From Mytilus trossulus (lineage: Eukaryota): a DNA stretch of 64,000 nucleotides. The notes beneath the pieces are model-generated. The model was not told where the DNA came from. It did no database searches and was given only the letters and a program-made list of their open reading frames with translations. A program made the translations under genes and the position numbers. Shown in pieces: positions 24,058-57,525 of this stretch (positions are counted from its first letter, which is position 1; the number at the start of each line of letters is the position of its first letter). Location: assembly GCF_036588685.1 (NCBI RefSeq), contig NC_086377.1:61876001-61940000 (forward strand), given 5' to 3'.

Positions 24058-24199
24058 ACAGATATATCATATTATGGAGGGGTATTTGCAGAAAATACCA
24101 ATCAAGGGACTGTGAAATTTCCCGAGTCGCTAGGCGAAAAAAATCTGTCCCAAGACTGGTATTTTTCACAAATACCCCTTCATAACATGATATATCTGT
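24058..24199. repeat. ~140-bp imperfect hairpin, part of a nested non-autonomous element (~23890-24575, possibly Crypton-like); mirrored at 34469-34610
   Basis: ACAGATATATCATATTATGGAGGGGTATTTG ... CAAATACCCCTTCATAACATGATATATCTGT, followed by ATTACACC ... GGTGTTAT short inverted motifs. Confidence 0.6.
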
Positions 24200-30034: not shown

Positions 30035-30244
30035 TAGATTATAGAGAGGTTAGGAAGGTAAGACACCAAGTTCTAACTAAAATAATTAGGTGGATTATCA
30101 ATAGGTTATAGAAAGGTAAGGAGGGTAAAACACCAGCTACTAACTGAAATAATTAGGTGGATTATCAATAGGTTATAGAGAGGTTAGGAAGGTAAGACAC
30201 CAGGTACTAACTGAAACAATAAAGTAGATTATCAGTAGATTATA
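30035..30244. repeat. 67-bp satellite, left part (~3 units)
   Basis: Unit GACACCAGGTACTAACTGAAATAATTAGGTGGATTATCAATAGGTTATAGAGAGGTTAGGAAGGTTA. Confidence 0.95.
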
Positions 30245-33200: not shown

Positions 33201-33365
33201 TGGAATAGATTCTATATATGCCTCAATAACTCTCCTTCAATAAAGACATTATTATTTTCGTTATTTCTATAAACAATAACGTCCAGCAAAAAGCAATCTA
33301 TTTTTTTTGTATGTAATAACACCTAATATAAGAAAGCCAGATTTTTATTGGTTGGTAGCCAGTGT

Positions 33366-34139
33366 TGAAATATTGAAATATTGGTTACATATTATTACAA
33401 ATAAACCAAAAGTTGTATATGATGTGTACAAACTCTTGTATGACGATGCTATCAATGGTTATGTAAACTGGGCCTCAAATATTCGTGATATGTTATATGA
33501 TCTTGGTTTAAATTATGTATGGCTAAACCAAGATGCTAGCACAATTTGTATAAATAACATTAAAACTCGTATTAAAGATCAATACTTGCAGAATTGGTCA
33601 GCTTCTATTCAAGAATGTAGTAAACTGTCTTTTTATAGTACATTTAAATTAACTTTTTATATTGAAAAATATCTGTCTTATAGCAATAATGTTAATCTGT
33701 TAACAAAGTTACGTAGTGGAACGTTAAAGTTAAATATTGAAGTTGGCCGTTATAATAATATTCCTAGAGAAAATCGTTTATGTGAATGTTGTAAAATGTG
33801 TGTTATTGAAGATGAATACCATTTTGTTCTTGTGTGTCCATCTTATAGATCTGTACGAACACAATTTTTACCAAAGTACTATTGTCATTGGCCTAATAAT
33901 ACCAAACTATTAAATTTACTACAAGCTTCTAGTAAGTCTCTTACGATCAAATTATGTAATTATGTAAAAGCTGCATGGAACATTCGATCTTATATAGTCT
34001 CATAACTTAATTTATATGTCATTGTATCATACTATAATTGTTCTCTGTTGTCTTCATGTTTTATATTATGTAATATATGTTGTTAATTTTGCCATAGCAT
34101 GTTTATGCTTTGCAATAAAGATTCATTCATTCATTCATT
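33366..34139 (+). mobile_element. 5'-truncated non-LTR retrotransposon (RTE-X/I-group-like), C-terminal part of ORF2 with CCHC zinc knuckle
   Basis: Open frame to the stop at 34005 with ...LRSGTLKLNIEVGRY...LCECCKMCVIEDEYHFVLVCPSY. AATAAA plus (ATTC)n tail. TSD CAGTGT (33360-33365, 34140-34145). Empty site in copy 1 at ~24525-24530. Confidence 0.9.
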
Positions 34140-35720
34140 CAGTGTATTTTTCGCATATTCTAATATTTTTCCTCATTTCAAACGAATTTGCCTGTTTTTC
34201 ATCACTGCCGGTGAATTTGCCTGAAATACCATGGTATTTGTCATTTTGGATATTCCTTTTTCACCCTCTCGAGCATCCGCCCTCAAAAAACTTAGATATG
34301 ACGTTACATAAAAAAGCGAGCTAACGCGTATTAGTACATGTATTATTACCACAGTTTTATGATAATTTCCTCTTAGCCTCAAAATTGTGCATAAAAATGT
34401 TAATGAATTGTAGCTTTCAAGTTCAAAAAAATCAAAGAGTTTCATTCCAAACTATACGGTGTAATTAAACAGATATATCATGTTATGAAGGGGTATTTGT
34501 GAAAAATACCAGTCTTGGGACAGATTTTTTTCGCCTAGCGACTCGGAAAATTTCACAGTCCCTTGACTGGTATTTTCTGCAAATACCCCTCCATAACATG
34601 ATATATCTGTCCAAAAGCACCTGCAAAATGATGCAACTTCTAGTATGCGATCCTATATCTAACGCCATAAGAAATAGTCGACATTTTATTGTAGCGTTAC
34701 GGCCTCACCCCCTATGTATTTTACTAACCCTCTATGGATCCGTAGGGGATCAGTAGCGAACCATATGACTTATAATAGAAAATGAATTAAGTTAAAAGGG
34801 GTCCCTAATCATTGTTAATTTAGAGTGATATAAGTATATAATAACAAATGAAGCTCCACTCTAAATCCGTTGACTGTTATAATAGACTGTATATGCAGTT
34901 TGCTGAAAATTAAAATTGATGTATCAGAAATCTATAAACCACTGCTTTTTTTTTTTTTGGAACTAATACAGATTAAAGTAATCCAAGAATCAGGGTTTTT
35001 TTCCAAATTGTTTACCATATTAAAAAAAACAGTTCTTACTCTTTTCAATCTGCTGTACACAGCCATTTTCTTGTTATGTTCTTCTTGTTTACCAGTCTCT
35101 TCTCTTCGTTTCTTTGCTTTGAACGATTCAAAATTTGTCTTTATTCCTTCTACAAAACAAAACATCTACTTAATGCAATTCAAAATAATAATTAAACAAA
35201 CGATTGCTTTTCTCGAATTGAGCCTAAACTGTAGTCCATTGTAGATTGTTTTCATGTGATATGATCGAAATGAAAATAAATCTACTAAAGTTACATGATA
35301 TTATGCATTTGCTAGTAAGTGATTCGATAACACTAAAACTTATTTATGGTATGGAAACTATATAGCGTTTCAAAATATTATTGAAAGTTATCTTAACTGC
35401 AATTTCGCCAATATTTTAATTATTTATTTTTTTGTACTACAAACCTCTTACAACCCCCTCCACTTCGTCAGGATATTGACCTTTTACGAATTTAATGATA
35501 AAATCGGACATCTCCTTATTCTCTGCAGAATTATATCTGAAAAAAAATCATTTGAAAATTAATCTTACTGAACATTACAGCTGAACAAAGGAGATCATTT
35601 CTTAAGCAAGCGTGTAACAAATGTCGGTAAAATAATCAATGTGTGCTGAAAAGTTGTTTGAATCTGAATTGAAGTATGATAATTAAATAAAATTAATATA
35701 TCTTGCAAACTTTTCATTTA

Positions 35721-36424
35721 ACAGTCAGGGGCATTACTTAAACAAATAACTTTTTAAATTACCTATATAAGTAATGTTGAAAACGAGGCTATTTTACAAA
35801 TTACTTATATAAGTAACTTTTCTAAATATTATTTTTATAGGTGACCAATTATACAAATTTTACTAGTTTTAACAAATTTTTACAGTCATCTGGTTATTTT
35901 TCCCATGAAATATAAAATATAATCTTTCTGAAACACTAATTGCTTTTCTGACGCACTTATCTTTGATATCGACGCTTCTTGGTCAAAGGTTGGTCTCTTG
36001 GGACTATTAAAATATCGTTTTCCTTCAAAATCTTAAAAGGAGACAGATATAAATAGATAGAAACTTATGAATTAATTAAGACTTGAAGTAATATAATTTG
36101 TAACCCATAACAATTACATATGTTCCTTAAATAAGTGTTATTACTAATTCTTTCAAAGATGTACAAAATAACTTATTCAAGTAACATTTTTGTCATTATT
36201 TTTAAAGTAACCCTTAATGTCTATTCTCCTCTCAAATCTTACAAATTCTTAAATTTATGATATAAAATGAAAGATGTAAAAAAATCATGAAAACGACATT
36301 TAGTCCCTGCTTCTATTGAAATTAAAAATAACTCTATTGAGTAATTTTATATTTTTTTAAAATCAAAAACTACCTATATAAGTAACTAAAAAAAGTTACA
36401 TGTTTAAGTAATGCCCCTGACTGT
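35721..36424. mobile_element. Same MITE in transposon copy 2
   Basis: Same TIRs; TTA on both sides. Confidence 0.8.
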
Positions 36425-39400
36425 TTAGAATGACTTAAAAGTTCAGATTTATACTCGAATTAGAGTTATGATAAAAGATTGAAAGTAATTAACTTTATGA
36501 TCATGTTTTGGTCTAGTTTTTTATTCAAAAAAAAAAATGTTTCAATGTCGTTAATCACAGATAATTGACCATAATCATTTCCGAAACCGAATTGTTTACT
36601 GACAAATGTTGACACATACATAACTGATTAATTGCATGTAGATAAACCATGCGGTTTTTTTTAATTTCCAACGGAATTTTAAAATCATTTAATTATAAAC
36701 ATACTTAATGATATTGCCAGCTTCGTTCTTTGTTTTCCATATGAAATCCCTTTCAATCATACCTTGCTGGAAACCACACCGTATTTATTGCTGAAAGGGA
36801 AAAGATACGCTCTTTTGCATTTGAATGCATTTAATTGCATGCATAAAATAAAAAAAACTGAGAACTGAACAAATGTATATGTGTAGAAAGTTTCAAATTA
36901 TACAAAAAGTAAAATATATATTCATAGAATTTCACGACTTCATTAATATTACGTTATAATAAACACAACAACATGTTTTCAAAGTTAGTAAAATGTCCCA
37001 GTTTTTGTACAATCAATACACAAATTGTAAGCGTACAATATTCATGCGAATCTTTTGCCGACAACAATCATGCTTAGCTTTGTAATCCGTTGAAAAATAA
37101 AAATAAATGACAATTTGCTAAAAGTATTGAATTTTCATTTCGCAAACATAGTGCATTGTAACAGTTATGTTGCACTACATAAAAATAAAGATTGTATATA
37201 AGCTATCCCTTCCCATATGCACAATGAATAATTACTTACTGCAATTTGTACAGGGACATTAATCTTTTGGCTTCTTTTTTTATGCATCTGTTTTTGAGTG
37301 TAGCATTTGAATCAAAATATCCACTTTCTTTTTAACATTACTTTGATTTTCTTGCACTTTTATCGTAGGACGTGTAGAAAAATCCGTTTGTTCGGAACAA
37401 AACTCGAGCAGTTCAACCCTGATATTTTAAGATGTCTGCACGTTGATTTTATTTACATTCAGATAATTTATCATTCATATAATTTTTGGTATATTAGATA
37501 AATAATTTCTGTTAAAAATATCTAATTTTCCGCTTTTCCAAAAACGAGGTTTATGTGTTTCCTATATGAAGTTTGACAGGGGTCGTTTCAACAAAGCGTC
37601 TGGTAAAAAAATGTCTTTAGACACTCTTACAGATTTTGAAATGCTTCTTATAAATAGTTACGATTGTGTTCTGCACAGGGTTGTGGTGTATTGTTTAAAT
37701 TCAAATCTTTATTAAATTTTGTTCATCTAGACCTCTGGAATGATTTTTCAAGTGAATATCTTTGTTAACTCTTTTTGAATTAGTTTTATGCATGAAGCGA
37801 ATTTTTATTTATCAGTTGTTTACCAATCTCTTAAACACATTATTTTTACTGAATAAAAGGATGTGTACTTTGATGGGTTTTACATATGATATTAATATAT
37901 ATTTTTAAAAATCTTCCTTCTCTAATTCCGTCTCAAATGTCCCTTTGAGTTTAGTATGCAAGGATTCTAGATTCATAAGACAAGAGGCCATGGCAAAAAA
38001 TGGAAAAAAAACCAACAGAAAAACAATAGGTTACATGACACAACATAAAAATCTAAAGAATAAGCAACATGAACCCCACATAAAAATAGGGTGATCTCAG
38101 GTGCTCCGGGAGGGTAAAAATCTACCCTTCCGAACATCATAACTTTTCGCAGGAAACTCAAATGTATTAATGAAAGAAGCATTGGACGAAAGAGTAAGCA
38201 AAAAAAACATGCGACCAAAGATAAATATCTAAAGATAACAATGACGATATAATCTCACAAAACGTAAGGCAAGCTATATATGTCTGTCTATGTCTGTCAC
38301 GTGTCTAATAATAATAATAATAATTCTTTATTTAAAGAGGGTTACACAGTTAGCTATAAAGCTAATCTTTCTTGAGACCCTGTCTTTCTGTGTTGTGATA
38401 TTACACTTTTGTTTCAGATAAAGTAAGGGGTCTGTACCAATTAAAACGTTTAAACCCCTTGCTTTTGTTTGCACATGACCAAAGTCCGGAATCTGATGTT
38501 CTGTTGATATACAGTTCATAAGTGTTTCTCGTTTCTCGTTTTTTAAATAAATTAAACCTTTGGTTTGCCATTTGAATGGTTTTACACTAGTTATTTTTTA
38601 TAGCTTGCTGTTCGATGTGAGCCAAAACAAATTCAGAAAATAATATATATATAACCATGTATATCAAATTCAATGTCATAGGCAAACAAGAAACACAATC
38701 TTATAATTTTGAATTGTTAAGACTGAAATATGAAGACATAAGTATTATTTAACTTATTCAGGAAAATACACAAGCAATGTAAGCATGACCCCCTGCCGTA
38801 TATTGAAATTTTTTTCCCTACGTTTGTATGCCCCACCTACGATAAAAGAGAGACATTATATTTTCTGGTCTGTACGTCCGTCCGTTCGTCCGTCCGTCTG
38901 TACCGGTCAAGGTTATTTTTTTTGGTCAATGTAGTTTTTGATGAAGTTGAAGTTCAATGAACTTGACACTTAGTACTCATGTTCCCTGTAATATGATCGT
39001 TCTAATCTTTATGCCAAATTAAAGTTTTGACCCCAATAACGGTCCACTAAACATAGAAATGATAGTGCGAAGTTTAAGTTAAAGTTTTTGGTTAGGGTAG
39101 TTTTTGATGAAGTTGAAGCCCAGTCAACTTGAAACATCCATGATATTATCTTTCTAATTTGCAAAAACATCAATAATTTTCAACCAATGATATAAAATAA
39201 AAGATTAATGAGAACTATGTAAGTTCTAAAATAATATGTAGATAAAGAATCTAGTATAATATGGGTTTTTAATTAAATACTAATGCATTTTAATGAATAT
39301 AAATAGGTGTCCTACGGTTAGGACGATCAATGCGATAGATCAAGTTAGACAAAGACATGTCATAAGATAGTCTTAGAACACGTAATTATCCTATGATAGC

Positions 39401-39631
39401 TTCGGGAACACCACCAAGAATTGCCATTAAAAACTTATTCTCGAAGAAGGTGTATTTACTCAACGAAGAACACAATATAAAAATAAGGATATGTGGTATT
39501 CCTATCAATGAGACAGCTATCCACCAAAGTTCATATGAAGAGGATTTAAGCAATTACAAGCAATTGCACGGCCTTTAACAATGACAAAAAACAATACCGT
39601 ATAAATAGTCGGCAATAAAAGGCCCCGACAA

Positions 39632-39721
39632 CACAGGCACTTGTCTCAGAAAAAAAAATCTTATATACGTTAATATAACAGGTATACATAGGAACATTTT
39701 TTTCTGAGACAAGTGCCTGTG
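39632..39721. mobile_element. Micro-MITE, copy in transposon copy 2
   Basis: Same TIRs; TSD CCCGACAA on both sides. Confidence 0.85.
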
Positions 39722-42700
39722 CCCGACAAGCTAACATTACCATTGTCTATCAACAGTTCACAATATTTATTGAAAGAAACGATTAATTCACATTAACTTC
39801 AAATAACAATACGTATATAACAATAAGTGTTGTGCTTCCAAGAAATGAACTAAAATTGTGCCTGCTCCTAAAGGATATGCAGATCATGCTTCATATATGG
39901 CAACCGTCATGTTGATCATTTATGAACAAATTTGATAAGAAGTTTCATTCCTAAATGTAACGTTCAAGGCAAACAGGATGATCAAAACATGCAATACTCT
40001 AAGGAACATATTACTGGTTATCTGTGAAATAAATATTACTGAATTGTAACCAACACGAAATTGGTTCGTAGCAGCTCAGATTGTCATATTATTTTCGATC
40101 TATAAGTTTGACGGTCCCTTTGGTATCTTTTGTCCCTCTTTTCGAAAGGATAACTATAACTACATCACGTGGAACCCATGGGTTTATAGCTTGCTTCTTA
40201 TTATCAAGTAGATCCTATTTGTCGTCAGGGGTCTAGAAACATGATAATTGTTTGGTGATCTTACCACGACAGAAGACACGCTGGACTGTGTGTGATGTAT
40301 AAATTCGTCCGGTCAGAAAGACAACGTTACGTGACAAGATGCCGATGCTTTATTATAATATGAACCCTTGTAACAATTCTGTGAGAGGAAAGGCGTTGGT
40401 CAGTTACAAGGCCTAAATTCTGTTCCTTTTCCATATACCAACATTTTCAATTTGCATTCCAACTTTCCAGACACCATCCCGGTATAACCCCTATTCCAGG
40501 ACCTAACTATTGTATAGATTTACTTTTAATTGGTCTCATCCTGATAATGCATGACACATTTGCCCTAGACCTTAGTCAAACATCAATAGTATCACAGAAA
40601 TTATGTGAGGACATAAAAGCTCTGGAATATTGTATCAAATGGAGCTATACAAGCTATACACAAGAGCTGCTAAGATATTTTTCAAAGACATGAAAAGTTA
40701 GGTAGACGCCATCATCTCTTTTATGTCAAGTGTTTGTTTGAAATCGGCCATCATGGTCAATTTCTAGATGTATAAGTCAAGTTGAGTGACAAACTTAACT
40801 ATACAGTGGTATCCTTTCAAGTTCGATACGATAGATCGATACATTCGACGGAGTCACCATCATTGAACTATTTAGCGAGAGGACATCATCTACATATCGG
40901 ACTGTTAATATAATTTGAATGTTCCGAAGGAAATGTTACTCGTATGAATAATGAAATAGTCTACGAGCATAAACCCAGTTAATTTCCATATAATGCCGAT
41001 TCCTTGTCGAAAAGTTGTCACCCAAACTTACAGATATGTAGTCAATAAAAATTACCAATCATCTTGAAAAAAGCAGCTTCAGAGAATTTCTGTATGAATA
41101 TAAAGAGATTTTTTTTTTACATTATGTTGATAAATTGTTCATTACTAAATGTTCTGTGACAAACTCATGTGTGTTTAGGACGATGACCATGAGTAACGTT
41201 AGGATGTGCAAGGTTCTGGTCTGCAAGGAAGGCGGACGGAAAATGTTGGACTGTCATTGGAAAATAAGGGCATGTTACGTACGGACTCCTTCTTTAACGT
41301 GCAATCAGCAACACTCGTTTACACAAAGCACCGGATTACATAGATATAAGAAGATGAAGTATGACTGCCAATGAGACAACTCTCCATCCAAGTCACAATT
41401 TGTAAAAGTAAACCATAATAGGTCAAAGTACGGTCTTCAACAAGGGCCCCAAAAATAAGTAGTGGAAAACCGTTTAAACGGGAAAACCAACGGTCTAATA
41501 TTTTAAAAATAACCACACCAACAAATGATAACCACTGAACATCGAGTTCCTGTCCTAATTCCGAAGAGGCACGACTACCTATATTTATGTATCCCAAACA
41601 ACCAAAATGGAAGCCGCAACAGCGCAAGGATTTTACTACTGGAACCATTAGTACCAAAGAGGACAATATATCTAAATCCCAGTTAACCCTTGGGGTCTAT
41701 CACCAAGTACAATTTATTCCTCCATGAAACCAGATATCAGTATATACGTTAAACTTTGCTTTTTTTTTTATAAAGCAAAATTGGACAAATAATTTTGATT
41801 TAAAATTTTAAATATAAGTATAAAATCTTTATAGGATTACAAGAGGAAAAAAGTCTATGGAATATTTTGTATCCACATCTGATTCGTTATACATCTCTTA
41901 CATGTTATCAAACGAATGTTTATATCCGCATATACAAAATGGTTCAGTAGGGATTTATTCAGGATTTAATTATTCTAGTAAATATCTCTGATAAATATCT
42001 TTCGAAAAATAGTAAAATATCCATTATGCATTTTTTTTTTTAAATAATATTAAAAAGGATCAATACAAAAAATGTAGATTCCTTGTCTAAACATGTTTAC
42101 TATAGAATACGTTATGATATTATAAAATGTATTTTAGAATACAATTTATATGTTTTACATCGCCTTTCGTAGCAGCTTATTAGCTAAGTAGACATATTTT
42201 CTTTTAGTCTATTCATGCAATGCATGGTGCAAAAATAAATAAAAGAAAGAGAAAAACTGTATGGAATATACATTTATATTATTTACTATTTAAACACCCG
42301 TCTGCATTTGTGAATATATAAAAAGAACTTTACATTGTTTAGATTATATGTCGATTTTCTAAATTTGTAGATAAACGACTATATATCAAGTCAGAGTTCA
42401 AATTATCATATAATAGTTTAACACGTCCCATTAAGTTAATTGATCAGGAACGCCACGATCTTATTGTGATGAAAGTTTTATAATAAAGTACTATTGGCGT
42501 CCTTTGATCATTTATCAGAAAATGCGCCCTACTACGAAACATTTGTTCTTGCGGATGTGAAAATATCTGCCAGATTTTATTTACATTAGAGTTAGGGCAA
42601 TGAGGTCATATAACCTCTTTGGTTATTTCACTTCCATGGTTAGGGTAAAAAAAAAACCTGAATAATTAAAAGTCAGGCGTTGATAAAATAAATAATAATA

Positions 42701-45700
42701 ATCTTTATTGTCATATGTATTTCAACAAATCAAACGTGTTTGTGACAAACAGAAAAAAAACCGTAACATATACACATACATATAATATACCAGTATATAT
42801 GTATATATATACATGTATCTATTGTTGCAAGTATATACATGTAATATAGTGAAAACCCTAAATACAAATTACAGCATATTAATAAACCACAAAACTTTAA
42901 ACCATGCATCGGTAAATCAAGCCCTGTCCTCAGTTTACAAACGAGCCTAAAATATGCTGATTTTTTTTATTTATTGATCATGATGAGTATGTTTTTGTCT
43001 GTTAGTGTAACACATAAAGTCAGTATTTTGAAAATCATTTGCAGAGAAGTTATCATTTCTTACATGTTTATTTATTTCGCAATAAAAGAAGGAGTGAAAT
43101 TCACTATCTGTAACTTTAAAAAGGCAAAAAATTTTAAAAATAGTTTAAACATGGAAAGCAGCTAATTTCCTTTAAATTTTTTTCTACTAAGACCATACAT
43201 GTAGTGTCAAATGTGTACTTTTAGATTTACACATATATTTGTTTTACATATTTTCGGACACGTGATTATCTTATTACTGTATTATAAAAATTTGTTCAGA
43301 TGCATGGCACACGACTTCAATTTTACAGATACATGTACATGTATTTGCAAGTTTTTAGTATTTATTATTAAACGATCTGTTGGACACTCATAAGCAATTT
43401 AAATCGCAGGGGAGTTTTAAACTCCATATTGGATTATAATTGATAAACTCAAGTTACGACCTTTGTATACAGACCTTTATATTTAAAAAAAACTTATGGA
43501 AATTTTGATCTCAGATTTTAATAGATACATAAACCATGGAAGTATAAATATTAATTACATCCCTAGACCGCGCATTTGGAAAGGTTCAGAGTTTGAATTT
43601 GGAAAGGTTCAGAGTTTAAATTTGGAAAGGTTCAGAGTTTGAATCTGAAAAGTATTCTTGATATCCATTCGTTAGGCTAACATTAAAAGAACAAAGCATG
43701 AGATTATGGACCATGTATATTTTTCCTTCCAATAAAATAGACTTGTGGTTAATTTTCACTGATGTTTTATATGTTGTACAATTGTATCGTGCATTGTTAT
43801 GTAAATCATATGTGCTTTATCCAATGGATAATTTGGATTTTTGCAAGTACGAAATTTCGACACGTTACATGAAGTATAAAAAATACAGGGAAATTAACCG
43901 TACCTCTATAAAATTCCATATACTTAAGTTTTGCTTTATCTAAATCTTGAACTCTGCTTTAATACACAAGGCCAATGTATACCAAATTGTATATGCCACA
44001 TCTGTCTATATCATAGAAACTGTGATTGGTAAACAAACATAGCTGTAATAGTTACACAAAAGATTCCATTGAACCACATTTGCATCTTTCTTTCTATGAT
44101 ACTAAAAGATGAAATATACATGTACATACAAAGACACATAATAACGATTTCTCGGTTTTTACAGATTGGATTGCGGTGCGATTGCCCATATATTACGACA
44201 TTTCATAGATCCGTCACTCATTTTGTTTGAAAATGATAAACCACTTAAAAAAAGGGACTAGTCAGCAAATATTTTGACTGTTACTTTTAAAAAAGTTAAA
44301 CACTTTACAAATATGATATTCCATAAGGGGACCGTTCCCCTGCCCCTCCCCACTTCCTCATCTTCTCACAGTTGTAATCGAAATTTCGCTTCATTGGAGT
44401 CGGTGTTGACAAAGTCGTCTGCCGGTGAACATTAAAAACAAACCTGAATGATACAATGGCATACATACTTGTATTAACTATATTATTCAAGATCTCCGAA
44501 ATTAAAATGATTTATTCAATATTTTTGGCAAAAAAATACAGTATATCTGTTCTTATAAACAAACTAAAATAAAATCATTTTACCCGTAAACGAAAAGAAT
44601 CGTATGAACAATTAGTTGCTTGCTGGTTTTAGTGACACTTTCATTACGCTTGGTTTTCCATGACAATCAAGATTAATTTGTAGAGAAAGCCAGAGAAAAC
44701 CACTGGCCTTCAACAAGAAAACAAGTAACGTGTGTCTATTTTTAAAGATCTAAGCTGAACACACTTTGCCGAAGAAAGAACCACAGTCACAGCCTCAGTT
44801 TTGACACGCTTGTGGCCATTGCAGGTACTAGATTATCGTTTCGGGGCCTTTTATAGCTGACTATGCTGTATGGGCTTTGCTCATTGTTGAAGGCCGAACG
44901 TCGATCTATAGTTGTTAATTTCTGTGTCATTTTGGACTCTAGTGGAGAGTTGTCTCATTTACAATCATAACCACATCTTTTTGTATATACGTTGACACCT
45001 CGGTGATAAAGTTCCCTTCACATATCGACAGATCCAGTTTTCTTATGACAAATGAATATTCTATGTCATATTCATTGAAATGGATATGGTTTGTTGAATT
45101 GGTTCGTTCTGTATCTGTATCTGTAATAATTGTCACTGCACGATGAAATGATCTATTAACCGTTCATAGGAATTGCAAAAGTGTTCTCTTTCAACTTCTC
45201 TTTCTGTGTACTGTTAAAGGGGATGACCATGTTATTGTTGCAGAGGGGCAGTAGACGATTTCGGGTGGAGAATATCAATTTTCCCCTTTTGCGATGCCGG
45301 CTTTTTCTTTTTTTTTTTTTTTTTATCTAAAATGGTCTTTTTCCAGAGACATGTATAACAAGACCAGAATATTCAGGTGTTATAATCTCCCTCAAAGAAA
45401 ATCAAATGTTCGTTCTCATATAAACAAAGAAAATCTTTATTATTTTAATAGATATAGGAAGATGTGGTGTGAGTGCCAATGAGACAACTCTCCATCCAAA
45501 TAACACATATTTATAGAGAAAATTGATTAAGATTTTTAGATAGCTGCGTAACATCAACAAACAGTTCACTCTAATTTTAATGCGAACGGTTTTAGAAGAT
45601 TTACAATGTATGTAGACCGATACACTGAGTTGGCATTTTAAAATAATGACTTCATTTATAGTGCGAAAAAGAACACAATTTGCTTGATATTATTACAAGA

Positions 45701-46611
45701 CTTTGTCTTTGCTCTTTGATCAAACCCACAACATCTAAGCCTGTACATAGGACAATTACAAACTCTTTACCGTGAAACTACCGATGTGGTACAATTGTAA
45801 TACAAGAAAAAATTCTAGAGTTAAATAGAACTTAATTCAAAAGCAACATGCAACTGTTGTATAGGATAATTCAAGCATATTGTGTTTGCCATTTTACCTG
45901 TGTGGAAGTTCTTGTAAAAAAAAATTCTTTTGAAGAAGACCTACGACATACGATGATTTTGAGCTTGTCATCATGACTTGTACAAAATGAATATTACCTT
46001 TAAGTTCGGTCTCAATGTCAAAATATCAATGTCGGATTATTCATATTAATGTTACCTTTCCGAATATAGTTCTTTGATTCGACCTTTTTGATTTGATGTT
46101 AAATGAGTCGGTGTATTTTTTTGTCAATCGTACATGACTTTGTGCTAATATGCATGATATTGGTTCTCTAGAAAAAGTTCTCGGTTTCGAACTTTATGTA
46201 CGTGTGACATTAAATAAAAAACAAAGATAGATTTCAGTATTAAAATAAGATAGTTTTCATACAATAACAATTTGAACTAATTTTAGCCAGATTATGAAAT
46301 TCTGTGATATATGACAAATCTGGGTGTAGAGAATATACGGAGAAATGCATAACGTCAAAATGTAATAATGGGATGGAAATTGTGTTTTCGTCATCAGTTG
46401 TTATAAACTGACTACTAAAACTTTCAAATAGTTCTGCAAGATTGCCTAGTTTTCATTTATGAAACAAAACATTCACAGCTCAACTTTCTCATATGATTAA
46501 AAAAAAAGGGGGGGGGGGCTCCGGATCCGCATGCTAAAGTTCATCATTATTCCTGAAACACATTTCGAGATAGTTTTTTTTTCTTCGCTTTATGAGAGAA
46601 GTAAGCGGTCT

Positions 46612-46649
<38 letters not shown>

Positions 46650-49600
46650 GTCCGTCTGAACCAGTGACAACTCTACAACAGATTTATCCATCGGATCATC
46701 CATCAGCAGTGATGGTGATACATGGCTGTGTACATTCTGTATATACAACTCGTCTAAACATCAACCCAACAATGTAAGATCTGTAAATTTGATATAGGCT
46801 TCGAGATTTAGTTCTAAATATTTAAAAACACCAAAAAGGTACGGTTAACTGTCGAAGCAGTTAACATTTCAGTACTATAAGGCTAGGTTATAGTACTAGG
46901 ATGAACCTAGCACTGCTTTCGTGTTTAGATAATATTTAGGGGCCAGCTGAAGGACGGCTCCGGGTGCGGGAATTTTTCACTTCATTGAAGACCTGTTGGT
47001 GATCTCTGTTGTTTTCTTTTTCTTCTATGGTCGGGTTGTTGTCTCTTGGACACATTCCCCATTTCCATTCTCAATTTTATTAGAGTATAACGCAAATCTA
47101 GGCAATGCTCGGGAATGTGTAAATAGTACTAAATACGCAATCACGCATGGTGAAGTCAGAAGTCAGATCAGTGAAATTATTCTGATTCCACTTCTAAATA
47201 GATTGAACATAGCGCATTTTCACGCTTTAGAACCGTTTTATCAAAAGTATGTGACTTTTCAGATTGAGGCTTTTTAAAGCAGAAACTTTTATCCAACATA
47301 TCTTCTTTTTATGAACACTCCAAATATTATAACGTAAACACATTTTATGTTACAAGTATGATTACAAGCATTTTAATCACGAACATTGATTCAGATAATA
47401 TTTATAGTAAGAACAATTAGAAACAAGCACTTGACGTATGTTTTATGTCAGATAAGTTTTGAGCAGTCATTGTCCTAAATCCGACATCAGCGATTGTTCC
47501 AACACTGTCCAAGATATATAAGCGGATTGTTGATATGTTTAAACCGGTTCTTGGACGTTCCTGTCCAAAGTCAATATCAAGTCCTTGGGTTTTCTTGTTT
47601 TCGTTTAGTTTATTATTTACGTATATTCTGACCGTGCTTTTTCAATTTCGCTTAGTTGTTATTGTTTTATATTTAATTACTTGTAATTGATGGCTTAATT
47701 TCAATACAGTGTATGAGATTAGCTCATTGGTGACGGTCATGCGATGAACCCATATCTGTTGGTCTCTGGTGGATTTATGTATAATCCTAATACTTATACA
47801 AATTGTGAGAAAATAAAAATTTGTAGAAGACTATATAATGTAAATTATCTATTTAAACGTTTAATAGTTTGGATAAATGTTTTACATTGTTATAAATAAA
47901 AATAAGAGATTTTGAATTAAATCGGTGAACATGAATTTGACAGCTAGTGCCCCTTTAACATAGTCATCATGTCAACATAACCATTGCACTATGATTTTCC
48001 TATAATCATTGTCATACTTGTTTTAATATCATGGACAGAGTGTCACATACACTTGTATAAGGGAATCTGTTTGCAACTACAGTAAATGAATTATCAGATA
48101 CGAAATAAATAGTGTAAGATATCAAAAATAAAAAAAACGGAATTTTGAAAAAAAAGACCGATTTTCTACATTTCTACATTTCGTAGTGGTTGTGTAGGAT
48201 TTTTATAGTGTCCCTCATGAAATAGTGTCCACTGGACATTATTTCATAGTAAATACTGTCCATGGACACGATTTCCTATGCAAAATATGCCCTCAGGTAT
48301 GAAAAAGTGTCCATGGACGTGGACATTATCTAATTCTATAATTCTGTCCAGGGGGATATTTTATCTCAGGATAATGTGTCCACACAGACAATTTTTTATA
48401 TGATAAAGTATTAAATGATATTTATCGCCTTGTAAACTATACGTATTGTAACCTACATGTATAATTGCGAACTTGAATACATTGTTACTTTGAAAAAGAG
48501 TTGTTTCATTAGTACACATGTATACCATCCTTATCTTCTTATTTATATTTTTTTGATAAGTACATGTATAATGATTTAAGTTCAAAATACTTTTCAGTAT
48601 TATTTTCCAAGGACATACTAGACATATTTTAATAACACTAACTACTTATAAATATTGTCCTGTAGTTGGACCATATTTCATACCTGTAGCTATTATTGTT
48701 AACTGCTGTCCACTTACAGAACAACATTTTATTACAATGAACATTATTTATACCAAAATTCTATATTTTATTTTGTCTTCTTCTCATTATAAGTATAGTA
48801 CAGTTGCTCAAATTTGATTTTTATACTTTACAAACTTTCTTCTTTCATTGTCATTAGCATTAACTGGGTATTTCAAAGAAATTAATGTCTCTATATTCGT
48901 TTCCAACCATAATATGTTTGTTAACATTTGTATATTAATCAGTCATGCGAGTTTCTCTTCAATTGTTCAGATTTTATTAAAATTCAAGTATATTAAAACT
49001 TTTTAATGACCTTTGTATTACTTCCCTTGGAGGACACAATTTAATAGCAGATTCTATGAAAGTTGTCCTGTGGTTAACGCTATTTCATGGTTTTTGCAGT
49101 AAAAATATGTCCACTTAAGCGACAATATTTCATGGCAATTAATGGACATTATTAAATACCAAAATTCAATGAAAAACTGTCCAGGTGGACACATTTTCAC
49201 AGGACACTATTAAGTCTTGCACTTGCTTCATATTTTTATTTTTCTTCGGCTTCTTAATTCAAAGATTGGCCAGACTCTTTCAATTGTTTTGTTTACATAA
49301 ACAGATACTAGATATATGATCTGTTTAGGAAAATAGCCATGTCCTTTTTCTATTTTTTTTTAACCTTGATTGTATATTACAAATTCGTTTATGTGCTGGC
49401 ATTGTTGTGGTAGTAAATAGAAAGATATAAACGGTAAATTAACCAATCAGCATGTATCTAATATTTAAGAATAACCAAATACAACGTTGTTGTAAATGCA
49501 GCGCAGTTAGTTCCCCTGGATGCATCTTTTGCAATCAAAGGGAGGTAAACTCTACGAACATAAGGATACAATTTTGGATTCATACTAAGCAAAACTAGAT

Positions 49601-50745
49601 GTATGCTGAACAATTACAACATATGCTTATTTATTGCAAAATTTAAAAACACTGACTATAATGATAATGCAAAGGAATATAAATAATGCCGAATAATATA
49701 CGAATGATTAAACCGTTTAATAGCATAATACACCATATTTGATGTTTATAAAAATAAGGAGATGTGGCATATTTGCCGATGAGACAACTAAGTTTACTTA
49801 ATATTGAATTCTGTGTCCACACTAGTAGAAAATAAATTAAATTTCATTTCAAAATGCTCAATATATATATATATATATGTATATCCACCAAAATTCAGAT
49901 GAAGTGGATTTAAGTTATAGGCAACCGTACAGAACGTTTTCAACGATGAGAAAAACCCTATACCGTATAGTCGGCTACAATAAGCCCCGACATAAAAACT
50001 ATGAAACAATTAAATTGAGAAAACTAAAAGCCATATTTCTTAATAACCCCAACATTGTTAAATTATGTACGAGGAAAATTAGAATTTGCAATGTAACTTG
50101 AAGAAGTTATATAATAATGGAAAGGGGAGTAAAGAATTAGTAGTAACTTTGACCCCAAAACATAGTCTTTTTTAATAAATGATTTATAAGCCGATATATC
50201 CAACCTATAAGATTAAATAACTGTTGTCTCAAATGTCTGCACAAAAGTAATGTATAGTAACTTTCCTCGGTATCCGATAATTCAGTGAACACATGCAAAG
50301 AAGAAAAAAGAAATAGAATAACTTGAATATAAAATAAATGCTATATTGTGCTAATTTGCTTTAAACCACTCCTAACTATATGTATACTATAAAAATAACT
50401 CTCATTAAAGATGGGGTCAAATGTAATTTAACTAGACTTTAAATTGCAAAAAAAAACATAACAGATTAAATTCTCATAAATTAGAAGTAGAAAATATTTT
50501 AAATTCTCATTATTCGTTATTCAATTCCAACTAAAAAACTTTTTATAAATTCTGATAAACTTGAAATATATTGTATTGTAAATTTACTTCAATGTGAATT
50601 AATTTTCAAATCGAAGCAATTCAGTAATTTCTGACAAACTTGTAGTATAATTTGCCTTAAATTTCAAGTATATTTCTAAACTTAAGTAGAAAGAAATTTA
50701 TTGAAAAATTAAATGTTAGTAAACGCATGCGTTCATGCAGTGATA

Positions 50746-52495
50746 GAAAGGTAAGGAGGGTAAGACACCAGGTACTAACTGAAATTAGTAGGTAGATTAT
50801 CAATAGATTATAGAGAGGTTAGGAAGGTTAGACACCAGGTACTAACTGAAATAATTAGGTAGATTATCAATAGGTAATAGAGAGGTTAGGAAGGTTAGAC
50901 ACCAGGTACTAACTGAAATAATTAGGTGGATTATCAATAGGTTATAGAGAGGTTAGGAAGGTTAGACACCAGGTACTAACTGAAATAATTAGGTGGATTA
51001 TCAATAGGTTATAGAGAGGTTAGGAAGGTTAGACACCAGGTACTAACTGAAACAATAAAGTAGATTATCAGTAGATTATAGAGAGGTTAGGAAGGTTAGA
51101 CACCAGGTACTAACTGAACCAATTATGTGGATTATCAATAGGTTATAGATAGGGTTAGGAAGGTAAGACACCAGGTACTAACTGAAATAATTAGGTGGAT
51201 TATCAATAGGTTATAGAGATGTTAGGGAGGTAAGACACCAGGTACTAACTGAAATAATTAGGTGAATTATCAATAGGTTATAGAGAGGTTAGGAAGGTTA
51301 GACACCAGGTACTAACTGAAACAATAAAGTAGATTATCAGTAGATTATAGAGAGGTTAGGAAGGTTAGACACCAGGTACTAACTGAAATAATTAGGTGAA
51401 TTATCAATAGGTTATAGAGAGGTTAGGAAGGTTAGACACCAGGTACTAACTGAACCAATTATGTGGATTATCAATAGATTATAGAGAGGTTAGGAAGGTA
51501 AGACACCAGGTACTAACTGAAATAATTAGGTGGATTATCAATAGGTTATAGAGAGGTTAGGAAGGTTAGACACCAGGTACTAACTGATATAATTAGGTGG
51601 ATTATCAATAGATTATAGAGAGGTTAGGAAGGTTAGACACCAGGTACTAACTGAAATAATTAGGTAGATTATCAATACATTATAGAGAGGTTAGGAAGGT
51701 TATACACCAGGTACTAACTGAAATAATTAGGTAGATTATCAATAGATTATAGAGAGGTTAGGTAGGTTAGACACCAGGTACTAACTGAAATAATTAGGTG
51801 GATTATCAATAGGTTATAGAGAGGTTAGGAAGGTTAGACACCAGGTACTAACTGAAACAATAAAGTAGATTATCAGTAGATTATAGAGAGGTTAGGAAGG
51901 TTAGACACCAGGTACTAACTGAAATAATTAGGTAGATTATCAATAGATTATAGAGAGGTTAGGAAGGTTAGACACCAGGTACTAACTGAAATAATTAGGT
52001 AGATTATCAGTAGATTATAGAGAGGTTAGGAAGGTTAGACACCAGGTACTAACTGAACCAATTATGTGGATTATCAATAGATTATAGAGAGGTTAGGAAG
52101 GTTAGACACCAGGTACTAACTGAAATAATTAGGTAGATTATCAGTAGATTATAGAGAGGTTAGGAAGGTTAGACACCAGGTACTAACTGAAATAATTAGG
52201 TAGATTATCAATAGATTATAGAGAGGTTAGGAAGGTTAGACACCAGGTACTAACTGAAATAATTAGGTAGATTATCAGTAGATTATAGAGAGGTTAGGAA
52301 GGTTAGACACCAGGTACTAACTGAACCAATTATGTGGATTATCAATAGATTATAGAGAGGCTAGGAAGGTAAGACACAACTACTAACTGAAACAATTTAG
52401 TATATTATTAATAGATGTAAAGAGGTTAAGAAACGTTAAACACCAGCTAATACGGAAACAATTAAGCGGATCATGAATAGATTATTGAGAGGTTA
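50746..52495. repeat. 67-bp satellite, right part (~26 units)
   Basis: GACACCAGG recurs at 50764, 50831, 50898 and onward; the array degenerates after ~52370. Confidence 0.97.
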
Positions 52496-52738: not shown

Positions 52739-52874
52739 CTGGTAAGAAGATATCTTCTGTTGTAAGTATGGCTCTATCACCCTTAACCCTACCGGGTTCA
52801 GAGGCTTCTGTGTATATGTAGTAATCTCCCTCGGCTGCACCTGCCGGTCCTGTATCAGAACTTCCCGTTTTTCC
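52739..52874 (-). CDS. Coding exon 4: MAM domain continued
   Basis: tttaag|...|gtagct, phase 0-1: GKTGSSDTGPAGAAEGDYYIYTEASEPGRVKGDRAILTTEDIFLP, matching the MAM TGP...YxYxEAS...GDxAxL motif. Confidence 0.9.
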
Positions 52875-52904
52875 CTTAAAGATAAATAAGCTGTTTTTGA
52901 CAAA

Positions 52905-53060
52905 CTTTTGAGGAATGTTGGTCCTCCATGCTCTTCAACTTGGTACTTTACTTGGACTTTTAACTTTTTTGGATTCGAACGTCACTGCTGAGTCTTTTGT
53001 AGACGAAAGGTGCGTCTGGCGGATGTACAAAAGTTAGTACTGGTATCTATGATGAGTTCA
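52905..53060 (+). mobile_element. Retrozyme/Penelope-associated repeat with a degenerate type I hammerhead ribozyme (~52980-53022)
   Basis: CTGCTGA-GTC-ttttgta-GAC-GAAA; core mutated from CTGATGA. Confidence 0.65.
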
Positions 53061-54298
53061 TTAAGTTCATTTATCTTATTTTGAATCATTAAAATTTGTG
53101 GTTTTCCCATTTTATGACATCAGAGCCAAAAACACTTACTTTTTGAATGCTGTAAATGGAAAATTGTTGCAATGTTTTATCAATAAGTAAAAGCATCTCA
53201 TTGAGTATATCAATAATAAGAACTTGCTTTCTTGAGTTTAGTACATATATCTGTACATACAATCGCCATCATTAAACTGGCATTTTAGTTCATTTTTCAA
53301 AAATCGCAATCTTAAATGCACGCATTATTTCGGCAATTACAGTAGTGCAATCCTATTGTTGGAATAATTAAAAGGAGTTTATGGGCGTTTGAACTGTACA
53401 ATATTCTCTTTTGAGTTTAAAAAAAAATCTTATTGTTTTACCATACCAAAGCACTGAACACATTATACAAATAAAGGCAACAGTAATATACCGCTAATCA
53501 AAACTCCTAAATCCATAGACAAAAAACAAAATCGGGGTAACAAACTAAAACCGAGGGAAACACATTAAATATAATAGGAGAACAACGACACAACACTAAC
53601 ATGTAACACACATAGAAACGGACCAATCATCAGACAAAATCCCACGAGAGTAACAAATATAACATCAAAACCAAATACATGAATTTGGGATAGACAAGTA
53701 CCGTGACACGTCTTATCGCAATGTACAAATCAGGGAACAGGGCTATATTAAACAAAATAAATCTTTGTATTAAAATAAAAGAGGAAGATATATACTGAGT
53801 GTGAAGTACGAGGTCGATATACTTCTTGATGTCAATGTATCCTCGTATCGACCTCATAAAAAGGCTACAATTGTGACATCATAATGGTCAAGAGTGAACG
53901 GAAAGTCACGTGTTTGGTTGTTGTGATTGTGTCAAACATTCTGAAAATTACAGTGCAATATCACTACTCTTCTAAGAGTAACCGTGCAATGTAACTTTTC
54001 TATTTTGTTTATAGTCTACCTTTGGAAATATAGTTGATTCTTTCCAAAAGAATAAAACAATAAGTAAGTATATACACAACCCAACCATAATTTTAATAAA
54101 TGTATGAGCTTTCCCTCAATCATTTGTTAAGTTTAAGGTCTGTCGTCAGGATGTAAAATTTTGTCTACAAACTCCTTTTTTAGGAAAACTTATTAAAACA
54201 AAGTATTAGTCAACACCAATATCACGTGATTAAAAACTTACGCGAAATCATACAACTTTTTTTTTTAAAGATAAATTGGATTTTTTCTAAGAACTTAC

Positions 54299-54390
54299 GG
54301 TGCGTCGTGTCCAATCAAATTCATCTTGATCTGTATCCTGGAAAATACATGGTGCTCCCTCAGTCTCAAATCCACAACTGTAGCCTATAA
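54299..54390 (-). CDS. Coding exon 3: N-terminus of a MAM domain
   Basis: gacag|...|gtaagt, phase 1-0: (I)IGYSCGFETEGAPCIFQDTDQDEFDWTRRT, matching the MAM C-x-FE...C...DxFDW motif. Confidence 0.9.
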
Positions 54391-54487
54391 CTGTCGAAAA
54401 AAGGTCGAATGTAATGCACTTTCTTATTATTGTAGAGACTTTGTTTCGCGTTTATCCCCAGCCCACCAGTCAGCACTAGACAATAAT

Positions 54488-54757
54488 ATCAATCATGTGG
54501 TCATTTTTTTTTAATTTCCTGTTTAGAAAACTTTGATTTTTTGGAAAAATAAGGATTTTCTTATCCCAAGCAGAGATTACCTTATCCGTATTTGGCACTA
54601 TTATTTGGAAATTTTGGTCCTCAATGCTCTTCAACTTTGTACTTGTTTGGCTTTATAACTATTATGATCGGAGCGTCACCACTGATGATCGAGTCTCATG
54701 TAGACGAAACGGGCGTCTGGGGTATTAAATTATAATCCTGGTACCTCTGATAACTAT
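54488..54757 (+). mobile_element. Retrozyme-like repeat with a degenerate hammerhead (~54671-54725)
   Basis: CTGATGA-tcga-GTC-tcatgta-GAC-GAAAC; a small insertion disrupts stem II. Confidence 0.65.
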
Positions 54758-55444
54758 TTGCAAGTAAGGGTTAGGATATCTGTATCATTGGCAATCATAC
54801 CACGTTACCATACTCTAATGCTGGTTTATTGGTTCACTAGGATGTTGGTTCAATATTTATTTCATTCCAACTTGTATTGTGTGCTACTGTACAGAAGAAC
54901 TTTATACGGAGGAATAATGTCAACAGTTATATAACGCTGTAGAAAAGTAAAACATCGATGGAGAGAAAACAAATGTGAGTTAAAAACTAAAAAAAACACG
55001 GCGAACTATTTGAGGGAAACACTTAAGTGCAAAAAAAAAAACGCCAACATACAGATACATGGAACAGGACATATAAAGAAGAAATTATACATGAATAAAG
55101 GCAACAGTAGAATACCGCTGATCAAAAGTCATATTTCAATGGACAAACAACATAATCGGGGAAACAAACTAAAACTGAGGGAAACGCATTGCATATAAGA
55201 GGAGAACAACGACACAATATTAAAATGTAACACACACAGGAACATAATAAGCATTAGACAAAATCTTATGAGAATAACAAATATAATATCAACATGACAC
55301 TTACTAAAAAACAACTTATTTTGCGACTTTCCAATGTAGAAAAATAACATGCGTTTAAATCGTTGCTAAAATGTAAAAATATGTGAAAATTCTAACTTTC
55401 AAAACATCATACAATTAAATAACCTTGGGTTAGAAGGCAACAAT

Positions 55445-55620
55445 TAGTTAACAAAGGTGCCAGGATTATTATTTAAAACGCCAGACGCTTGTTTCGTCTA
55501 TGTAAGACTAATCAGTGACGCTCATATGAAAATAGTTATAAAACCAAACAAGTACAAAGTTGAACAACATTGATGACCCAAAATTCCAAAAGGCAGTGCC
55601 AAATAAGGATAAGGTAGCAA
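55445..55620 (-). mobile_element. Retrozyme-like repeat with a degenerate hammerhead (~55476-55523)
   Basis: Minus strand GAGCGTCA-CTGATTA-GTC-ttacata-GAC-GAAAC-aagcgtctggcgt. Confidence 0.65.
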
Positions 55621-55844
55621 GGTCTTCTAACCCTTTTAGGGCACATTTTTTTTTATCGTCCACGGGAACATTTCAAATTTGGTTTTGGTCAGAAATGTTT
55701 CTTTTTCTTATTTGAAATTTCACTGTGGTCATATTTTCAAGCCGCTTTCATCGAAATTTATCATATAGGCCTCGGTGGCCGAATTTTCTTAAAAATTACT
55801 ACAGTACTATAAAAACTAGCCAGTCAACACTGACGATGTGCGAT

Positions 55845-56005
55845 CGAACTTTGCTCTCGGCTCTATTCTCGAGGATTGTTAGTTTTCCTATCGTAGCGGT
55901 GGTTTTCTCCGGTCATGCACCAACAAAGAACGGCCGCCATGAAATAGCCCGAAAGCGGAGAATAAAAGTGGCGTTAAAACACAGAAAATCAGAAAATCAA
56001 ATCGA
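55845..56005 (+). mobile_element. 3' part of a bivalve-type SINE
   Basis: GGTGGTTTTCTCCGG...GGCCGCCATGAAATAGC...AAAGTGGCGTTAAAACAC followed by an (AAATC)-like tail. Recognised from recall. Confidence 0.5.
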
Positions 56006-56348
56006 AATTGAACACAAAATATTTGAAGAAGAAGAAATCGAAAAATTATCCACGATATGTTTTAAAATATTACTTTTTAATTACAATTTCATATGCAACA
56101 TCGTCAAATCTTCAAACACTTCCTATATAGACGAGTGACTTTAACCATAGAGATTAGCAGACATTATTCAAATACATTTTGAAATATTTAAAGCGTATTT
56201 TTGATAGACAGCACATGTTTTCTGAATACAGCCGTGTGTTAGATGGGTACATGAAAGTCGTTAACTTAGCGTCTTTTTAGGTCATCCGCCTAATATATTT
56301 AACTCTATTTGAAAGTCTTTCATTGGCATTATTTTTGTGTATACTTAC

Positions 56349-56474
56349 TTTTACAACATGGTTCTCCATAACAACATGTACCTTCACTTTTCCATCCATC
56401 TTCAATTGTTTCAGTGCAGTTTACACCTTTATTTCCGCATATACCATTTGCAGCGAAACATTTTTTAGTAAGAC
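56349..56474 (-). CDS. Coding exon 2: beta-defensin-like Cys-rich module
   Basis: tttcag|...|gtaagt, phase 1-1: (S)LTKKCFAANGICGNKGVNCTETIEDGWKSEGTCCYGEPCCK. Confidence 0.85.
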
Positions 56475-56551
56475 CTGAAAAATTCAGTACTGTGATGCAA
56501 TATGACATAGTTCACTCTGTGTCATGCATTACAGGTATTAGTTACAACACA

Positions 56552-56815
56552 TTTTTATGTCCCATTTATAAGCATTATGTTTTTCCGTCTATGCGTCCGT
56601 TCATTCGTCCGTTCGTTCGACCTTTTGTTCGTTTGTTCGTTTTTGTACCGCTTCAAGTTAAAGTTTTTGGTCGAGGTAGTTTTTAATGAAGTTGAAGTCA
56701 AATCAACTTGAAACTTTGTTTACATGTTCCCTATGATATGATCTTTCTAATTTCATGCCAAATCAAACATAGAAAATGATAGTGCATTCGTATACTTGGG
56801 GCACAATCTTGTTTT
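56552..56815 (-). mobile_element. HINE/DINE-1-like element related to the one at 11475-11808
   Basis: (CGTY)n microsatellite followed by the GTAGTTTTTAATGAAGTTGAAGTC core. Confidence 0.6.
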
Positions 56816-56965
56816 AAGTATGTTCTAATGCTTACAAAACTAATATCCAAAAAATACTAAATCTGTGGAAATTCAAAACGGAAAGTTCCTTGTCAAATGG
56901 CAAAATCAAAAGATCATCCGAAACAAAAGAATAGATCACAGGCATTTTCTCATGTACAAAAAAAA

Positions 56966-57445
56966 TGTGCATTTAAGCAGTAAAAGACCTTAGTTTATTA
57001 TTATGAAATCATTCTAGCCAGCTTTCATCTGTGTGTCATTTTAGCAGTGAAAGACTTTAGTTTATAATTATGAAATCATTCTAGCAAGCACTCATCTGTG
57101 TGTTAATTAAACAGTAAAAGACCTTATTTTATAATTATGAAATCATTCTAGCCAGCACTCATATGTGTGTTATTTTAGCAGTAAAAGACCTTAGTTTATA
57201 ATTATGAAATCATTCTAGCCAGCACTCATCTGTGTGTTATTTAAGCAGTAAAAGACCTTAGTTTATAATTATGAAATCATTCTGGCAAGCACTCATCGGT
57301 GTGTTATTTAAGCAGTAAAAAACCTTAGTTTATAATTATGAAATCATTCTAGCCAGCACTCATCTGTTTGTTATTTAAGCAGTAAAAAACCTTAGTTTAT
57401 AATTATGAAATCATTCTAGCCAGCACTCATCTGTTTGTTATTAAA
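56966..57445. repeat. Second, unrelated 67-bp minisatellite (~7 units), intronic
   Basis: ATGAAATCATTC at 57003, 57070, 57137, 57204, 57271, 57338 and 57405. Confidence 0.95.
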
Positions 57446-57461
57446 CATAACGTTTACTTAC

Positions 57462-57525
57462 TTTCACATTGCGACACACAAATTGTGTTAAGGAAAAATG
57501 CAACCAAGCAACAAATCTTTGTCAT
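57462..57525 (-). CDS. First coding exon (signal peptide) of a secreted defensin-like/MAM protein
   Basis: tttcag|CATT ATG...: MTKICCLVAFFLNTICVSQCE + A|gtaagt. Hydrophobic N-terminus; phase 1. Confidence 0.8.

Follow-up and report, generated by a model that had tools for sequence, protein, structure and literature searches.

Two described systems serve as a reference for the gene considered here. MDGA1 and MDGA2 combine immunoglobulin (Ig) domains, an FN3 domain and a MAM domain with a glycosylphosphatidylinositol anchor. The fold of beta-defensins (trans-defensins) is a three-stranded antiparallel beta-sheet. Defensins of this type hold six cysteines paired C1-5, C2-4 and C3-6, and in both big defensins and beta-defensins the Cys-rich region is preceded at its 5' end by a phase-1 intron (cysteine pairing and intron position from excerpts of PMC7203481). 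We analyzed a stretch of 64,000 nucleotides from the mussel Mytilus trossulus (GCF_036588685.1, contig NC_086377.1, here C5, positions 61,876,001 to 61,940,000), hereafter the window. A preliminary description had recognized, between window positions 52739 and 57525, four exons of an unannotated gene for a secreted protein joining a beta-defensin-like module to a MAM domain. The locus is probably a truncated and rearranged copy of such a gene. Its 41-residue Cys module, which has no Pfam model, stands at the front of MAM, lectin, fibrinogen-related and Sushi proteins encoded by more than 100 genes. By itself the locus, damaged in an ordinary way by satellites and transposons, carries little weight; the module family is the interesting part.

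The four exons lie on the minus strand where they had been placed, with AG acceptors, GT donors and compatible phases throughout (1, 1-1, 1-0 and 0-1; Table 1). Exon 2 spans 41 whole codons and holds the seven cysteines in the predicted pattern, C-x6-C-x6-C-x13-CC-x4-CC. Exon 4 ends at a phase-1 donor (CAG/GTAGCT) without a stop codon, and read-through past it meets a stop after 13 further codons. The closest copy of the gene is a paralogue at C11:5.080-5.087 Mb of the same genome, which has exons 1-6 with canonical splice sites, exons 1-4 being arranged as in the window. Exon 1 differs from its C11 counterpart by one amino acid, and its peptide shares 50-61% identity with the N-terminal ends of family members that carry a MAM or a C-type lectin domain; the signal peptide was called by eye and from likeness to family N-termini. 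The Cys at the end of exon 1 (..SQCE) is also present in the C11 copy, and similar cysteines occur in three family proteins (P0040, P0051 and P0056). All similarity searches were run exon by exon, not on a joined spliced model, and no database protein returned was more than 82% identical to the window exons. Rfam gave no match in window positions 50000-60000. A plus-strand open reading frame at 55725-56135 has a sub-threshold Pfam match only.

The exon-2 peptide is one of many. It matches at least 121 exons genome-wide (six-frame search, expectation value (E) up to 10), 73 of them at E below 1e-3, and all seven Cys positions are kept in 69 of 70 loci fetched. Before alignment we dropped a copy with an in-frame stop and an extra Cys (L035), one in which the first Cys is Tyr (L070), two that are identical to others (L027 and L032, to L026 and L031), and the window copy itself (L008). 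In the 66 distinct, intact copies that were aligned, the seven cysteines and Gly31 are invariant. The odd number of cysteines had led to the speculation that relatives might carry an eighth at the Ser of GWKSEG, which we reject: none of the 66 has Cys there. The symmetric phase 1-1 exon noticed at the window locus proved to be a property of the family, with a phase-1 AG acceptor in 29 and a phase-1 GT donor in 25 of 30 genomic copies. Median net charge is +4 over the 66 copies; the window copy, at 0, is the least cationic and has the near-invariant Phe23 and Gly24 replaced.

The company that the module keeps was read from proteins. We searched 1.84 billion representative proteins with a profile of 27 copies (A1) and obtained 32 matches at E up to 1e-3, of which 30 were scanned with Pfam for partner domains (P0002 and P0018 were left out). 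Among the 24 best hits, 23 were scanned, and in these the module was followed by MAM in 4, by a C-type lectin domain only in 5, by Sushi, accompanied or not by lectin, in 7 and by a fibrinogen-related domain in 2, with nothing recognized in 5; the other 7 scanned hits were weak, multi-fragment matches. The leader exon accompanies the module across the family proteins. Since the same leader and module, the latter on a phase 1-1 exon, stand before MAM, C-type lectin, fibrinogen-related and Sushi-plus-lectin proteins, the spread of a leader-module cassette by exon shuffling is supported, in agreement with what the preliminary description had expected from the exon phases alone.

Pfam has no family for the module, as judged by zero matches for all 27 copies at E up to 10. 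Ten profile hits were looked up for species: nine had a name, in every case Mytilus, and the tenth carried none. The full-length module-MAM relatives that we found are likewise all from Mytilus. As far as these libraries show, the module thus appears to be restricted to this genus. We found no description of it in a literature search that covered titles and main-text excerpts. In a survey of bivalve C-type lectin architectures (PMC10140915), the portions of the main text available contain none of the terms 'defensin', 'N-terminal' or 'MAM', and its supplements may list such architectures.

The MAM part of the prediction survived in half. Pfam on single exons placed exon 3 on MAM positions 1-24 (E 0.21) and returned no family for exon 4, and the window exons were not among the best 150 matches of a whole-genome search with PF00629. 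After this meagre yield we built our own MAM profile, for which 12 repeats were taken from a large MAM gene on C9 of the same genome. It assigned exon 3 to positions 1-24 (E 0.009) and exon 4 to positions 23-68 (E 7e-4). The two exons align with residues 65-138 of P0048, a family protein from M. galloprovincialis whose MAM domain occupies residues 69-227; exon 3 is 80% identical to residues 65-94 of that protein and exon 4 is 66% identical to it. The window exons therefore encode about 70 of the 158 positions of the domain. As an observation apart, C9:52350763-52362353 is a single open frame of 3,512 codons in which more than 15 complete MAM domains follow one another (E down to 7e-42), set within a cluster of MAM exons of about 150 kb.

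In the C11 paralogue, the rest of the domain is supplied by exon 5 (MAM 73-124, E 6e-8) and exon 6 (MAM 131-157, E 5.5e-4). For MAM positions from about 70 to 158 we found no exon downstream on the minus strand, either in the window or in the 10 kb past its low end. We then extended the region from 10 kb below to 20 kb above the window (94 kb in all; 'ext' denotes window coordinates continued beyond the window end). Within it, exon-5 segments of the family match solely ext 69062-69229 (11 of 11 queries), and a whole-genome six-frame search with the C11 exons gave as closest exon-5 copy, and the only close one, C5:61945050-61945229 on the minus strand, 85% identical. This displaced exon 5 (ext 69050-69229) is found 11.5 kb upstream of exon 1, beyond the window; its frame is open and its acceptor kept. 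Our MAM profile found no exon 6 in the 94 kb; across the same region the last-40-residue segments of family proteins reached E 0.037 at best, within satellite, and a genome-wide search for exon 6 gave nothing near the locus. As a control we took 15 instances of a module exon followed by an exon-4-like exon. An exon-5-like exon lies downstream in 14 of them, and the window copy is the exception. Nor does the window locus have a complete open reading frame ending a few residues past the last MAM Cys, as would be expected of a complete family member.

Exons 5 and 6 not being downstream, the window copy as it stands therefore cannot encode a whole MAM domain. It is thus highly improbable that the four exons make up a complete, hitherto unannotated gene whose product is a secreted defensin-like/MAM effector. 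In favour of such a gene are the canonical splice sites, with their matching phases, and the existence of intact members with this architecture (P0008 and P0048), but here exon 4 is followed by no terminal stop, the exons cover no more than about 70 of 158 MAM positions and the remainder is not downstream.

What follows exon 4 is a satellite made from the gene itself. Each unit of the intron-4 satellite consists of the intron-4 acceptor and the first 24 nt of C11 exon 5, and the C11 copy carries about three such units; the satellite therefore arose by amplification of the intron-4/exon-5 junction. The junction (..TTTCAG/TTAGT..) is kept in 20 units (50700-52740), most of which, read in the frame of exon 4, meet TAA after 12 codons. 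A CACTA-like giant element interrupts the array at 50742/50743, with satellite on both flanks (Table 1). We rejected insertion of this transposon alone as the cause of the missing exon 5: even when the elements are taken out, the satellite runs into sequence unrelated to exon 5. A second satellite block stands before the displaced exon 5, and the two blocks are near-identical (50743-51710 and ext 70613-71580, 99.6%; 30035-30244 and ext 69802-70011, 99.0%). That a gene should break through a satellite born from an intron/exon junction, which leaves about 20 spare acceptors, is unusual.

Table 1. Features of the locus and its surroundings, in window coordinates (ext, continued beyond the window end)
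Feature	Position	Strand	Description
Exon 1	57462..57525	minus	64 nt; ATG start; hydrophobic leader of 21 codons + 1 nt; donor GTAAGT, phase 1
Exon 2	56349..56474	minus	126 nt; seven-Cys module; acceptor ..TTTTTCAG; donor GTAAGT; symmetric phase 1-1
Exon 3	54299..54390	minus	92 nt; linker and MAM positions 1-24; phase 1-0
Exon 4	52739..52874	minus	136 nt; MAM positions about 23-68; phase 0-1
Intron-1 satellite	56971..57442		67-bp period, 7 copies; unit differs from that of the intron-4 satellite
Intron-4 satellite	50743..52495	minus	67 bp, 26 units (Tandem Repeats Finder); starts about 245 bases after exon 4
CACTA-like giant element, right copy	30245..50742		20.5 kb; terminal inverted repeats CACTGCATGA...; 3-bp target duplication ATA
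Last three satellite units	30035..30244	minus	far side of the transposon; then sequence unrelated to exon 5
CACTA-like element, left copy	393..27659	inverted relative to right copy	terminal inverted repeats CACTGCATGA...; target duplication TAC; 2.6 kb away
Second satellite block	ext 69208-71580		outside the window; precedes displaced exon 5

Other repeats accompany these features. The two CACTA-like copies are 96-98% identical, and the left one contains an 8-kb tandem duplication (4686-12701 and 12701-20717, 99.7% identical). The intron-1 satellite is shared with the C11 paralogue at about 90% identity. Short repeated elements, in several copies and some of them as inverted pairs, lie in introns 2 and 3 (53462-53724, 55095-55292, 54513-54759 and 55442-55611); they recur upstream of exon 1 and in the C11 copy and resemble small non-autonomous transposons. 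Just downstream of the displaced exon 5 is a tandem repeat with a period of about 69 bp (ext 68594-69038, C5:61944594-61945038), found in the same place in the C11 copy. Directly past exon 6 of that copy, units of about 67 bp are repeated in a long tandem array (C11:5076110-5079876; L001 6110-9876). The units resemble the 3' end of exon 6, and many frames of the array weakly match MAM positions 130-158; it is apparently a second satellite born from an exon of this gene.

Comparison with C11 also bears on the history of the locus. Identity is 93.8% across 4.1 kb, from upstream of exon 1 into intron 3, and falls to 68-73.5% (nucleotide) in the region of exon 4, exon 4 itself being 73.5% identical in nucleotides and about 74% in amino acids. 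This step indicates that the locus is a mosaic, in which a recent conversion or duplication would have brought the 5' part onto an older copy. Exon 2 differs from its C11 counterpart at 7 nucleotides in 7 codons, 6 of the changes being nonsynonymous and 1 synonymous, all acquired after that recent event, and the module of the window copy has lost its net positive charge. Exon 3 shows 4 differences from C11; the synonymous and nonsynonymous codon changes number 12 and 12 in exon 4, and 8 and 9 in exon 5. In order and phase, the leader exon, the module exon and the first MAM exons of the window copy conform to the family.

Directly observed are how the exons are arranged and which of them are missing, where the satellite comes from, that a transposon was inserted and that a paralogue exists; from these we infer a loss of function: the locus is most likely a pseudogene or relic. 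We read it as the 5' part (exons 1-4) of a member of a Mytilus-specific family, in which intron 4 was filled by satellite from the intron-4/exon-5 junction and the 20.5-kb CACTA-like transposon landed inside. In this assembly the array now ends in unrelated DNA, the exon-5 copy is stranded upstream of exon 1, behind the second satellite block, and exon 6, which would supply the last 30 MAM positions, is absent. This puts a whole MAM domain out of reach; at best, a product of about 150 amino acids could be made, stopping in satellite or in intron 4. The rearrangement may have come about by tandem duplication with deletions, by reinsertion of a circle or through misassembly.

Several points weigh against decay. 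Exons 1-4 and the displaced exon 5 have open frames and intact splice sites, with no stops or frameshifts, and the near-equal numbers of synonymous and nonsynonymous changes in exons 4 and 5 suggest purifying selection over most of their history. The C11 paralogue, which is apparently intact, is likewise unmatched among database proteins, and absence from annotation says little. In M. californianus (P0007) and M. galloprovincialis (P0056) the annotation includes gene models that break off directly behind exon 4, and given these models exon-4-terminated products might be real. Finally, satellites are prone to misassembly, and the near-identical ends give a circularly permuted layout, such as a collapsed tandem array could produce.

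This last point leads to the idea that the assembly is wrong or collapsed at the satellite, the true arrangement being either a unit of about 19.9 kb repeated in tandem or a plain gene of exon 4, satellite and exon 5, with exons 1-5 contiguous. Overlaying the near-identical satellite blocks would put exon 5 behind exon 4, like C11, and the displaced exon 5 has kept both its frame and its acceptor. We nevertheless consider such an error unlikely. The window contains no N, and the ends of the transposon are sharply defined and flanked by a 3-bp target duplication; past the displaced exon 5, homology to the C11 copy breaks off after about 450 bp; and even the repaired layout would have no exon 6 in 94 kb and would lack the last 30 MAM positions.

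A truncated gene might also be expressed and used, yielding a secreted protein of about 150 amino acids that comprises the Cys module and one half of a MAM domain and terminates through read-through into intron 4 or splicing to a satellite acceptor. The intact exons 1-4, the 20 acceptor-like junctions with their early in-frame stops and the similar models in M. californianus and M. galloprovincialis would all suit such a product. Half a beta-sandwich domain, however, would be unlikely to fold, the module is the one that has lost its charge and its Phe23 and Gly24, and the short annotated models may be broken genes or modelling artefacts. We regard continued use as distinctly improbable, and retain a pseudogene or relic as the reading of the locus.

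Intact members show what the gene would have encoded. P0048 (M. galloprovincialis, 230 amino acids, MAM E 1.2e-25) and P0008 (M. trossulus, 234 amino acids, MAM E 1.6e-29) have the leader-module-MAM architecture that the preliminary description ascribed to the window locus, where the second half of the MAM domain is lacking. Module-MAM proteins are present in NCBI for M. trossulus, M. edulis, M. galloprovincialis, M. californianus and M. coruscus, under automatic names such as 'MAM domain-containing glycosylphosphatidylinositol anchor protein 1/2-like'. Because Pfam finds the MAM domain alone in P0008 and P0048, with no Ig or FN3 domain, we take these proteins, on their domain content, not to be MDGA orthologues.

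We next consider whether the module is defensin-like, a resemblance first suggested by its Cys spacing. Searched against PDB sequences, the module profile had one match, platypus defensin-like peptide 1 (1b8w_A; profile positions 3-36), at a marginal E of 0.0055 and a score of 20 bits that includes 5 bits of composition bias. Five of the six defensin cysteines align, and the fourth faces Trp27 of the module. An AlphaFold model made from 27 copies was too poor to use (predicted local distance difference test (pLDDT) 57.7), and one made from the 66 copies reached pLDDT 76.7. With the latter, Foldseek returned 16 rows, comprising 14 beta-defensins, defensin-like peptide 1 and one scorpion toxin, all of them weak (E 1-9, template modelling score 0.26-0.55). 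VIA-align, run against 48,161 chains, gave seven at Z of at least 2, the highest being 2.6, and every one of them is a defensin-type peptide (hBD4, a crocodile defensin, two alpha-defensins, a sea-anemone peptide, and AvBD11 twice); a second look gave Z 2.2-2.7 for 12 of 16 chains, values which, by the program's own notes, can reflect merely a common arrangement.

Other searches bearing on this point were negative. The module profile matched no solved big defensin in sequence at E up to 10, the ESM Atlas yielded no usable match, and a six-frame search of this genome with PF14862 (big defensin) gave nothing, in a run that had no positive control here. The gene structure is more favourable: a phase-1 intron stands directly before the Cys region in 29 of 30 genomic module copies, the window's included. 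The six-Cys defensin pattern is absent, all 66 aligned copies having seven cysteines and a Trp at the position of defensin Cys 4. Taken together, the likeness to beta-defensins is suggestive but not proven. Homology to trans-defensins is a possibility that we entertain without favouring it, and a defensin-like fold is somewhat more probable than homology.

With these gradings in mind, the intact members may be pictured as secreted proteins of about 230 amino acids with a leader, a seven-Cys defensin-like module and one MAM domain. The mature N-terminus would then be a cationic, disulfide-knotted, beta-defensin-like head placed ahead of a recognition domain. Three disulfides would leave one free Cys, which could link two chains or tie the head to the body, and the head is a candidate for microbe binding, for killing or for mere oligomerization of the receptor. 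We offer as a tentative proposal, somewhat more apt to be wrong than right, that Mytilus recruited a true trans-defensin domain, added a seventh Cys, and mobilized it as a two-exon cassette of leader and head (phase 1-1) that now precedes recognition domains of at least four kinds (MAM, C-type lectin, fibrinogen-related and Sushi plus lectin) in more than 100 genes per genome. If this is true, these would be 'defensin-headed' receptors that unite recognition and a membrane-active or oligomerizing peptide in one chain, pointing to a class of immune receptor that carries its own defensin-like head; a derivative of a true trans-defensin would also illustrate, in a living animal, the exon-shuffling route by which defensins have been proposed to evolve. 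The window locus would then be a decayed member of the family, and its self-derived splice-junction satellite would show how such genes break.

How the locus and its module compare with known systems can now be set out. Like other partial duplicates and pseudogenes broken by satellites and transposons, the window copy has lost its 3' exons, has a transposon in an intron and shows mosaic identity; it differs from them in that its remaining exons bear no disabling mutation and that its satellite is built from its own splice junction. With the Mytilus proteins that carry the transferred MDGA name (P0048 and P0008) it shares the leader, the seven-Cys module and the start of the MAM domain, in the exon order of C11, but those proteins have the whole MAM domain whereas the window copy stops at about position 70.

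The module itself resembles big defensins and beta-defensins in being a small, cationic, presumably disulfide-knotted unit with a phase-1 intron before the Cys region (the latter a trait given for both groups in the excerpts of PMC7203481), and its AlphaFold model has nearly all its neighbours among defensins, at weak scores (Foldseek E of at least 1, Z 2.0-2.7). It differs from them in having seven cysteines rather than six, with a near-invariant Trp in place of the fourth and a second CC pair added; in that no Pfam defensin family matches any of the 27 copies; and in its position as the N-terminal head of larger proteins, rather than a free peptide or a C-terminal domain. Platypus defensin-like peptide 1 has six cysteines, comes from an unrelated organism and context and scores marginally, yet it is the sole PDB sequence that the module profile matches.

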